From positions 62,001 through 126,000 of the forward strand of contig NIVC01002676.1 in NCBI GenBank assembly GCA_002269645.1: DNA of 64,000 nucleotides, read 5' to 3'. Below the pieces are notes generated by a model that had not been told where the DNA came from, made no database searches, and saw only the letters and a list, made by a program, of their open reading frames with translations. The position numbers and the translations under genes are program-made. The DNA is from Macrostomum lignano (taxonomy: Eukaryota). Shown in pieces: positions 16,696-18,419 of this stretch; position 1 is the stretch's first letter, and each line of letters begins with the position of its first letter.

Positions 16696-17016
16696 CTACC
16701 AGGTGCAGAGCTTCAGCAGGCATGGGGTGACGCCGTAAGAGCGGCGATGCATGACGGGACCGGCTGGTGTTGGCTCTGCGGACTGCAGCCGACTCTCGTG
16801 AAGCTGCTGCTGCTGCTGCTGCTGCTGATAGTCCAGCAACATCTGCCGCAGCAGAACCCGGCGCATGGCCAGCTCGTCACTTTGGCGCAGATCGGGCTCA
16901 GCGTAGCGCATCCGGTCGCTTGCAACTTCGTCGTAATCAGCGACCGACATGCAGCGAACTCCGTGCAAGGCTGTTAGGCCAAGCAGCAGCGTCAGTGTAA
17001 TGCCGATTGGTGTCAT
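16696..17016 (-). CDS. Neuropeptide precursor, 106 aa: signal peptide, pro-region, RR cleavage site, C-terminal cyclic peptide SYGVTPCLLKLCTW
   Basis: Hydrophobic N-terminus (ITLTLLLGLTALHGVRC), dibasic RR at residues 91-92, two Cys in a C-x4-C ring at the C-terminus. Splice acceptor TTTGTTTAG just upstream of the ATG, TATAAA at about 17221-17226 (minus) and CCAAT near 17241. Confidence 0.75.
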   Translation of the reverse strand: MTPIGITLTLLLGLTALHGVRCMSVADYDEVASDRMRYAEPDLRQSDELAMRRVLLRQMLLDYQQQQQQQQLHESRLQSAEPTPAGPVMHRRSYGVTPCLLKLCTW

Positions 17017-18419
17017 CTTGGTTGACTATCCTAAACAAATTTGATAAAATAGATATGCAGAAATCTGAAAAGTAGCCAATAATAAGGTTAAAAACATTGC
17101 CTGCATACAAAAACATACCTGTGCGGATGAATCTCTCCTAAAATTAGATAAGATCTTGCCTGGGTACGATCTGTTCCGATGGGTTTCAGTGGATTTGGCT
17201 GCATTCGTCAAACAGGCGCATTTATAGAGGATTTGAGCAGCCAATCAGGTTTCTCGCTTTACAGGTAGAGCCTAACGAGTTCATCCCACAAGAGACGGCA
17301 ACAACAGCAGGCACCTGTCAGACAAATCGCGGAGGTGTGAGCAACTGCGGAGGCGTTCCATTGTGCTCTGTTTTCTAACTCCCGAATCGAAAAAACAGCG
17401 TGAGCCAAGGAAGCGCAAATTTAGCCTCTGGATAATCCCGCCAGAGTGAATTGCTTCTAAATTTATATCTCAATCTGTGTGAAAAATTAATTGGCGAATA
17501 TGGTTGCAGGAATAGACGAGACGAAACGAGATAAACTCTTCTGATCGATGATGTACACGAATACAGTATAAAATTTGGGCTTTTAAAAAGCAGAAAAAGG
17601 CAGATTTGGATGCTGCTGCAAGAGACTCAAGGAAGATTCCCACGGGATGCCCACAAAAGCTCGCACACGGTTCAAAATAGGCTGGAGGCTTAATGGGCCT
17701 AATATGGAGAAGGAGTGAATATTAGATTTTAATGTATTTCACCTTAGTCTGTGAGAGACACGCATGAGGCAAAAACTCGCCGATTAATAATGCCTAAATG
17801 TTGCATATAATTTAGTAGTGTACATTCACTTTTTAAGCCAAAAATGGTTGGCATTATGTGCAACAAATAAGTAATTATTTTATGCTCTTAATTAGCTGAG
17901 TCCTTGAGCAGCTGTTTGAATGGCCTGAATTGCTTGTCGATTTTCGAAAAATCGGGCCTCGATTGCTTCTGCTCTGAAAGCATTGATGTAGTGAACGAAA
18001 TGAAGAGCTATAAAATTATAAAAACTGTCTGGCGCGGCCACTTCAGCCATGTAAGGCAGTTGAGGATTGTCGCATTTGAGCTTGATTTTTAATGTTATCT
18101 CCCGATATCTCGCGCCAGGTGGCAACTGCACAGATACGCTGGTAGAAGTTGAAGCAAATATCATCGGCGTTATCTCGGCGTTAAGCACGTCGACAAATTC
18201 TACACATGGTTTCAACGATCAGTTGCTGGCTGGTAATACTGGGACAGTACTGGGGCAGCGACCTGCCTGTAGCTGCGCGTGAACACCATCACGATGCGGC
18301 CGCTGTAAACCTCTTTGACATGGCCTTCTAGGATAATAAGCGAGTCATCTTGGCCTCTTGGCCTCTTCTAATTCGGTAGCCATCCGGTGATGTCTCAGCT
18401 CGCCTGGCCTGACTGATTT

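Follow-up and report, generated by a model that had tools for sequence, protein, structure and literature searches.

The urotensin II (UII) of Aplysia, SGGMSLCLWKVCPAAPWLIS, is cyclised between its two cysteines and is freed from the C-terminus of a precursor of 112 amino acids (aa), which has two upstream basic cleavage sites and gives three fragments; mass spectrometry showed the cut at R92 (Romanova et al. 2012, PMC3493602). Koch et al. (2022, PMC9048919) placed this peptide in the protostome SSRP-like family, the hallmarks of which are a Cys loop of four residues, a WK motif after an aliphatic residue, an N-terminal Gly or Ser, and a tail with prolines and one Trp. According to the same study, SSRP-like peptides occur in Mollusca, Annelida, Brachiopoda, Rotifera and Xenacoelomorpha and are missing in Ecdysozoa (treated there as a loss), nemerteans and phoronids, flatworms being unmentioned; the WK motif is present in all of them and is critical for the activation of somatostatin/urotensin (SST/UT) receptors, and a phase-0 intron in the pro-region is common to all SSRP, SSRP-like and ASTC (allatostatin-C) genes examined (PMC9048919). 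Here we describe a minus-strand gene of the flatworm Macrostomum lignano that is predicted to encode a secreted precursor with a comparable cyclic peptide at its C-terminus. It lies in a 64,000-nt stretch of the genome (GenBank assembly GCA_002269645.1, contig NIVC01002676.1, positions 62,001 to 126,000 of the forward strand; this whole stretch is called the window, and all coordinates below are positions in it).

The open reading frame (ORF) is intact and runs from its ATG through 106 codons to a TAG stop (16698-16696, minus strand). The full product, MTPIGITLTLLLGLTALHGVRCMSVADYDEVASDRMRYAEPDLRQSDELAMRRVLLRQMLLDYQQQQQQQQLHESRLQSAEPTPAGPVMHRRSYGVTPCLLKLCTW, starts with MTPIGITLTLLLGLTALHGVRC followed by MSV, its pro-region ends in DYQQQQQQQQLHESRLQSAEPTPAGPVMH, and after Arg-Arg the protein closes with SYGVTPCLLKLCTW directly before the stop. 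The parts of the precursor gene are the following:

16696..17016, minus strand: coding sequence (CDS), one exon of 106 codons plus TAG, with 96-98% identity to GenBank BOX15_Mlig030219g1
17016, minus strand: start ATG in the context ACCAAGATGA, with A at -3
16951..17016, minus strand: predicted signal peptide, aa 1-22 (or cut after aa 19), a heuristic call from hydrophobicity and the -3/-1 rule
16747..16950, minus strand: pro-region, aa 23-90, containing R52R53 and the poly-Q tract
16804-16827, minus strand: poly-Q tract of 8 Gln (CAG x8) within the pro-region
16741..16746, minus strand: Arg91-Arg92, predicted prohormone-convertase site, paired by MAFFT with the Arg in front of the molluscan SSRP-like peptides
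16699..16740, minus strand: predicted mature 14-mer SYGVTPCLLKLCTW, aa 93-106, with a free-acid C-terminus
16705..16722, minus strand: predicted six-residue ring Cys99-Leu-Leu-Lys-Leu-Cys104, closed by a putative disulfide

The signal peptide-like N-terminus, the poly-Q pro-region, the RR site and the terminal 14-mer with a Cys ring of six residues, all of which had been noticed in an initial annotation made from the sequence without database searches, were recovered in this ORF. The N-terminus has a hydrophobic core of 14 residues (I4-L17) with 9-residue Kyte-Doolittle means of up to 2.5, and by the heuristic -3/-1 rule the signal could be cut after G19, C22, S24 or A26; a cut after C22 would leave exactly two cysteines in the pro-peptide. 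The last residues of the 14-mer are Thr-Trp, directly before the stop, so a Gly that could be amidated is lacking; its predicted [M+H]+ in the disulfide form is 1581.78 for the CLLKLC ring and 1615.76 for a CLLKFC paralogue (see below), and reduction should shift each by +2.016 Da. On the opposite strand, an ORF of 101 aa overlies the CDS (16672-16977, plus strand); it mirrors the CAG run and the GC-rich CDS as CTG/poly-Leu, and we saw no sign that it is a gene.

The precursor matches a transcript-derived model in GenBank, ‘hypothetical protein BOX15_Mlig030219g1, partial’; RNA-seq and transcripts assembled de novo underlie the annotation of the Mlig_3_7 assembly (StringTie/TACO/TBONE). The N-terminus of the model protein is a read-through of the 5' untranslated region (UTR), LYKCAC...DSSAQ/STKMTPIG (the slash marks the exon junction), and the window, when spliced at 17118/17026, yields the same N-terminal read-through, allelic differences aside. 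Because splicing rebuilds this read-through, both the transcript and the 5'UTR intron, which the initial annotation had called probable, are supported by data that are independent of the ORF. The protein of the model is encoded on two contigs of GCA_002269645.1 (designated L001 and L002), and the window holds a third copy. Outside the CDS, the following elements were identified:

17241..17245, plus strand: CCAAT motif, inverted relative to the gene and 15 nt upstream of the TATA box, the same in 3/3 genomic copies, with a putative function
17221..17226, minus strand: TATAAA box, identical in L001 and L002
17119..17229, minus strand: exon 1, 5'UTR only, minimum extent, through which the model protein reads as LYKCAC...DSSAQ
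17026..17118, minus strand: 5'UTR intron of GT-AG type, 93 nt, GTATGT...GGATAG, 28% GC, the splicing of which reproduces the DSSAQ/STK junction
16440..16695, minus strand: probable 3'UTR with an approximate end, the near-identity of the three copies breaking into indels after ~16445

The upstream TATA box of the initial annotation is thus the TATAAA at 17226-17221 (minus strand), and as a -30 element it is a candidate only, the transcript model starting at or before 17229, upstream of the box. With a start at or upstream of 17229, two upstream ATGs would precede the main ATG: the first (17221, minus strand) opens a short upstream ORF of 11 codons, and the second (17204, minus strand) one of 32 codons, the TGA of which overlaps the main start as ATGA (17016-17020). 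A TATA-driven start ~30 nt downstream of the box would leave both upstream ATGs outside the mRNA. In the probable 3'UTR AATAAA is absent, AATATA (16453) and AATACA (16445) being found instead. It had also been considered that CTG/GTAGGC at the last codon could be a splice donor that extends the peptide. The transcript-derived model ends in ...CTW-stop at the same TAG as the window ORF, so this candidate donor is unused and was ruled out.

The three genomic copies are ~97% identical over ~10 kb, and a 319-aa fatty-acid hydroxylase gene neighbours each of them. Relative to the window CDS, L001 and L002 have A39G, 10 instead of 8 Gln, and L103F (codon 103, window 16714; ~5517 in L001/L002), which changes the ring from CLLKLC to CLLKFC. 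M. lignano therefore probably produces both rings, CLLKLC and CLLKFC. The reading frame, the RR site and both cysteines are kept in 3/3 copies, the sole indel is in-frame, and the only change within the ring, L103F, is conservative. A comparison of the paralogues as a test of selection was discarded, the copies being so nearly identical over this length.

For the comparison with the SSRP-like family, seven molluscan members were retrieved. Their consensus is R-[SA]GG[MV]xLCLWK[VI]CPAAPWL, with cleavage after the R, and the peptide of Aplysia follows its cleavage Arg as SGGMSLCLWKVCPAAPWL. The rows of the MAFFT alignment read R and SGGMSLCLWKVCPAAPWLIS for Aplysia, R and AGGVVLCLWKVCPAAPWLV (continuing further) for Solemya, and RR, SYGVTPCLLKLC, a gap of three columns, TW and the stop for M. 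lignano. Invariant columns across the flatworm and the molluscs are the cleavage Arg, Gly, Cys, Leu, Lys, Cys and Trp, and six residues, rich in Ser and Gly, separate the cleavage Arg from the first Cys in both. The likeness extends to the precursor: as in Aplysia UII and the cone-snail peptides SSRPL1-2, a small protein (106 aa vs 112 aa) with a signal peptide (predicted in the flatworm) and two basic sites carries a single cyclic peptide at its extreme C-terminus, which is not amidated and has a Trp in its tail; in the C-x4-C ring, the first Cys is followed by Leu, ring position 4 is Lys, and the residue just ahead of the second Cys is aliphatic or hydrophobic. The precursor of Aplysia, with its 112 aa, C-terminal peptide and two upstream basic sites, agrees with the view of the initial annotation that the layout is typical of UII-type precursors, and the Aplysia ring that it had cited, CLWKVC, is that of the published peptide (PMC3493602). 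With regard to the hallmarks of the family, Leu100, before the position of the (W)K, is aliphatic and identical to the Leu of molluscan CLWK, and Ser93, Gly95 and the terminal Trp106 are present; the tail is TW without Pro, and the sole Pro of the peptide stands before the ring. The two also differ: the ring is CLWKVC in the SSRP-like peptides vs CLLKLC or CLLKFC in the flatworm, the tail is PAAPWL(I/V)x vs the two residues TW, cleavage is at a monobasic R vs a dibasic RR, and a phase-0 intron lies in the pro-region there whereas none lies in the flatworm CDS.

Peptides were aligned on the ring and scored (ungapped BLOSUM62 over the ten non-Cys positions, p against random residues of the composition of the window). 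The M. lignano peptide scored 14 against Aplysia (p about 0.0014, a post hoc value) and 13 against Solemya, and only -2 against both vertebrate UII (p about 0.1) and ancestral CNMamide, an arthropod peptide (p about 0.08-0.15), both at chance level. The match to Aplysia ranked first among the 95 C-x4-C sites in the six-frame translation of the window (next best 3), and Aplysia UII itself scored 7 against human UII, below the 14 of the flatworm-mollusc pair. From these ring-anchored scores, the molluscan SSRP-like peptides are the nearest known relatives by sequence.

Database searches agreed with the notion of a flatworm gene: the sole relative was the M. lignano protein BOX15_Mlig030219g1, which was also the only match when the full precursor was compared with 5.8 billion clusters. 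A scan of JGI metagenome contigs gave no relative, and an exact-product look-up of the 106-aa protein of the window gave no record. The literature search found no paper on the peptide, on the gene ID or on any flatworm UII- or SSRP-like peptide (an ‘npp’ name in Koziol et al. 2016 is possible), and three M. lignano expression papers do not list the gene ID in their supplements. Planarian ‘somatostatin-like’ immunoreactivity was tied to regeneration in 1986, and as cited in PMC10559094 it comes without a molecular identity. Within the literature searched, this secreted cyclic-peptide precursor is previously undescribed, as the initial annotation had thought possible for the ligand.

The best explanation overall, to which we assign a probability of about 0.5, is that the gene encodes a small secreted prohormone with a C-terminal cyclic signalling peptide, a divergent flatworm relative of the SSRP-like peptides. 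The parts of this reading are of unequal strength. That the locus is a real gene for a secreted protein of M. lignano is very likely, and that a cyclic signalling peptide is processed from the product is somewhat probable. True descent from the SSRP-like/UII peptides, with the M. lignano gene as a divergent flatworm member in which the pharmacophore Trp was replaced by Leu, is a tentative proposal from the sequence comparison that falls short of even odds. Membership of the family is plausible and unproven, the evidence being one species and about a dozen residues. We therefore do not count the peptide as a member and regard it as a variant that is built like an SSRP-like member and probably works like one, and its status as a neuropeptide, with respect to neuronal secretion and receptor class, is putative.

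In the mechanism that we propose for such a prohormone, the hydrophobic N-terminus would send the 106-aa product to the endoplasmic reticulum and would then be removed, most neatly after Cys22, and a disulfide would form between Cys99 and Cys104. A PC2-type convertase of the regulated secretory pathway would cut after Arg91-Arg92 and possibly after Arg52-Arg53, cuts at both dibasic sites giving three fragments, as in Aplysia. The C-terminal 14-mer, SYGVTPC(LLKL)CTW, would thereby be freed as a non-amidated cyclic peptide and, because it ends at the stop codon, would need no trimming by a carboxypeptidase. It would signal extracellularly, most probably via a rhodopsin-type G protein-coupled receptor (GPCR) of the somatostatin/urotensin/SSRP-like-receptor group; in Capitella, a ligand-receptor pair of the SSTL type has an EC50 of 13 nM.

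Several results weigh against the kinship with the SSRP-like peptides. The finding was chosen for this very resemblance, which makes its p value post hoc. The Trp of the WK motif is replaced by Leu (LK) in 3/3 copies, and the CDS has no phase-0 pro-region intron in the window or in L001/L002, the only intron being that of the 5'UTR (M. lignano genes average 4.9 introns). A mollusc-only hidden Markov model (HMM) gave E = 5.4 (rank 10 of 1,804 window ORFs), no orthologue from another species was found, and Pfam returned zero families at E <= 10, Urotensin_II and Somatostatin included, for the protein of the window or for BOX15_Mlig030219g1. With phmmer, the precursor recovered only the M. lignano copy among 1.84 billion representatives, and a mixed mollusc and flatworm profile, searched against the database, recovered molluscs and one chance match and left the flatworm protein itself unrecovered. 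Collins et al. (2010) list 51 Schmidtea prohormones, none with a terminal C-x2-K-x-C peptide, the K-x-C strings in their table belonging only to insulin-like, npp-2, spp-2 spacer and signal-peptide sequences. Furthermore, the flanks of the three copies are as similar as the CDS, so the agreement of the copies is uninformative on selection. Of the assignment to the UII/SST superfamily that was made in the initial annotation, the ring-anchored likeness to the molluscan SSRP-like peptides therefore stands, whereas the WK motif, the phase-0 intron, a significant HMM score, a Pfam match and orthologues are wanting.

An alternative is a secreted peptide that is specific to the lineage, has no homology to UII or the SSRP-like peptides and reached its C-x4-C ring with Lys by convergence, e.g., a product of glands or of the seminal fluid, an antimicrobial or toxin-like molecule, or a neuropeptide of a flatworm-only family. 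This alternative, which we hold to be rather unlikely, would explain an orphan precursor with no relative in 1.84 billion representatives or 5.8 billion clusters and no Pfam family, the joint absence of the family-defining Trp and the shared phase-0 intron, and an HMM score that is not significant. It also draws on the frequency of the layout itself. The pattern of an M-start, 50-250 aa, a hydrophobic N-terminus and [KR][KR]-x3-12-C-x4-C-x0-8-stop came up 0.023 times per 64 kb in 300 trinucleotide-preserving simulations, vs one observed, and no second clean instance was found within the 64-kb window; this rate, when extrapolated to several hundred Mb of genome, gives a few hundred chance ORFs, so the layout alone is no proof of function. 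A few hundred chance ORFs multiplied by 0.0014 leave in the order of 0.1-1 look-alike per genome. Against convergence speaks a match that reaches beyond the ring in one register (the cleavage Arg, Ser/Gly/Val, Leu, Lys, the aliphatic residue and the C-terminal Trp) and that exceeds the accepted match between Aplysia and human UII (14 vs 7); moreover, hormones of this superfamily are classically built with one short cyclic peptide at the extreme C-terminus, behind RR.

It is very unlikely that the transcript is non-coding or codes otherwise, and that the 106-aa ORF is fortuitous in a GC- and CAG-rich stretch. The model is flagged as ‘partial’ and ‘hypothetical’, two upstream ATGs would intervene if transcription begins at the model start, the antisense strand bears the 101-aa mirror ORF, a canonical AATAAA is absent, and the conservation among copies is uninformative, all of which suit a fortuitous ORF. 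Nevertheless, the CDS has 61% GC and, like bona fide neighbouring genes, a GC content that is much higher at third than at second codon positions (GC3 0.72 vs GC2 0.42), and GC falls sharply outside it, to 28% in the intron and 41-45% in the UTRs and flanks. The start context is good, with A at -3, a start ~30 nt past the TATA box would drop both upstream ATGs from the mRNA, the layout is rare by chance at the scale of the window, and the frame, the RR site and the Cys pair are intact in all three copies with an indel that keeps the frame. The gene is credible because of the transcript model and the codon-position signal, and not because of the layout alone.

Other known peptide systems were also compared with the M. 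lignano peptide. Vertebrate UII and URP share the ring size, the Lys at ring position 4, the C-terminal position after basic residues and the free acid, but have the core FWKY (CFWKYC) where the flatworm has LLKL; UT and URP genes also differ in having a phase-0 intron and two or three phase-1 introns. Allatostatin-C and somatostatin, which belong to the same hormone superfamily according to the literature, resemble it in that one peptide, cyclised by a disulfide, follows a basic site at the C-terminus, but their FNP- or FWKT-type core was not found in the flatworm peptide. The ring of ASTC is C-x6-C. In SS, CST and SS2, the loop spans 10-15 residues (PMC9048919), vs C-x4-C in the flatworm. 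The nematode peptide nlp-56 offers a precedent for a WK motif without Trp, which is replaced by Phe in a sequence with some similarity to SSRP (Koch et al. 2022, PMC9048919), but its own tie to the family is uncertain, as it forms a solitary cluster, and it is likened to the flatworm peptide by description only.

The arthropod CNMamide, GSYMSLCHFKICNM-NH2, is also a 14-mer with a C-x4-C ring, a hydrophobic-Lys-aliphatic run within it, two residues after it and a dibasic site before the peptide (PMC7179676, PMC8955854), but it is amidated (Gly and RKR follow) and has His-Phe at ring positions 2-3, whereas the flatworm peptide ends in CTW-stop. A relationship to CNMamide, as represented by this ancestral pterygote peptide, would fit the equal peptide length, the ring size, the position of the Lys, the aliphatic residue that precedes the second Cys, the tail of two residues, the placement behind a dibasic site towards the C-terminal end of the precursor, and the presence of CNMa-receptor-like orphan GPCRs outside arthropods, in nematodes, but it is highly improbable given a ring-anchored similarity at chance (p about 0.08-0.15), a CTW-stop end with neither a Gly amidation signal nor Cys-Asn-Met, and no lophotrochozoan CNMamide peptide in the literature examined. 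A window match to a CNMa-like peptide (score 22, at about 10196) was discarded as a translated tandem repeat. Apart from the flatworm, ancestral CNMamide, GSYMSLCHFKIC, and Aplysia UII, SGGMSLCLWKVC, reached a ring-anchored score of 16, above that of the flatworm and Aplysia (sequences from PMC7179676 and PMC3493602), and GSYMSLCHFKICNM-NH2 and SGGMSLCLWKVC share MSLC-x-aromatic-K-aliphatic-C in the same register. This match might hint at where CNMamide came from. A literature search for ‘CNMamide’ and ‘urotensin’ together gave one paper, in which both occur merely as abbreviations.

A bolder version of the divergent SSRP-like reading takes the gene as the first representative of Platyhelminthes in the bilaterian SSRP (somatostatin/urotensin) lineage, one in which the Trp, supposed to be indispensable, was lost (LWK to LLK), a possibility that we consider doubtful. 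Together with nlp-56 (FK) and CNMamide, such a member would point to one protostome-wide ‘C-x-hydrophobic-K-hydrophobic-C’ family that was kept in Ecdysozoa and flatworms, and the receptors of this family would have co-evolved with the changing pharmacophore. Koch et al. (2022) based their revised history of the somatostatin/urotensin and allatostatin-C systems on where SSRP-like peptides occur, and a flatworm ligand, if true, fills a gap at the level of a phylum. If homology and receptor pairing are true, the peptide is a natural Trp-to-Leu variant of the pharmacophore for work on receptor structure and activity, and M. lignano, a transgenic and regenerating model, gains an entry point to this signalling system. 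If the gene encodes a lineage-specific secreted product instead, it adds to the orphan genes of flatworms and is of modest interest.

Some 1.7 kb downstream of the peptide gene, and like it on the minus strand, is an intronless ORF of 319 aa (13994-14953) with a fatty-acid hydroxylase domain (PF04116, E = 2.4e-22), which L001 and L002 keep in synteny. An ATG ORF of 325 aa (21690-22667, plus strand) looks helical or coiled-coil, with a Gly/Ala-rich hydrophobic segment at about aa 195-235, and has no Pfam family above threshold. Much of the window consists of mini- and microsatellite arrays (6267-13051, 20627-20962, 31789-33840 and 39305-57512), among them (ATAG)n of ~2.3 kb, (ACTG)n of ~1 kb, and units of 12-60 nt in 10-100 copies, and these arrays account for most of the long ‘ORFs’ and for the strong GC and AT skews. 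Two exon-like ORFs of other genes were also found, a leucine-rich-repeat segment at 32576-33058 (plus strand; LRR_8, E = 4e-15) and a protein-tyrosine-phosphatase fragment at 44725-45465 (minus strand; PF00102, E = 1.4e-22), the latter running into a 26-nt tandem repeat.

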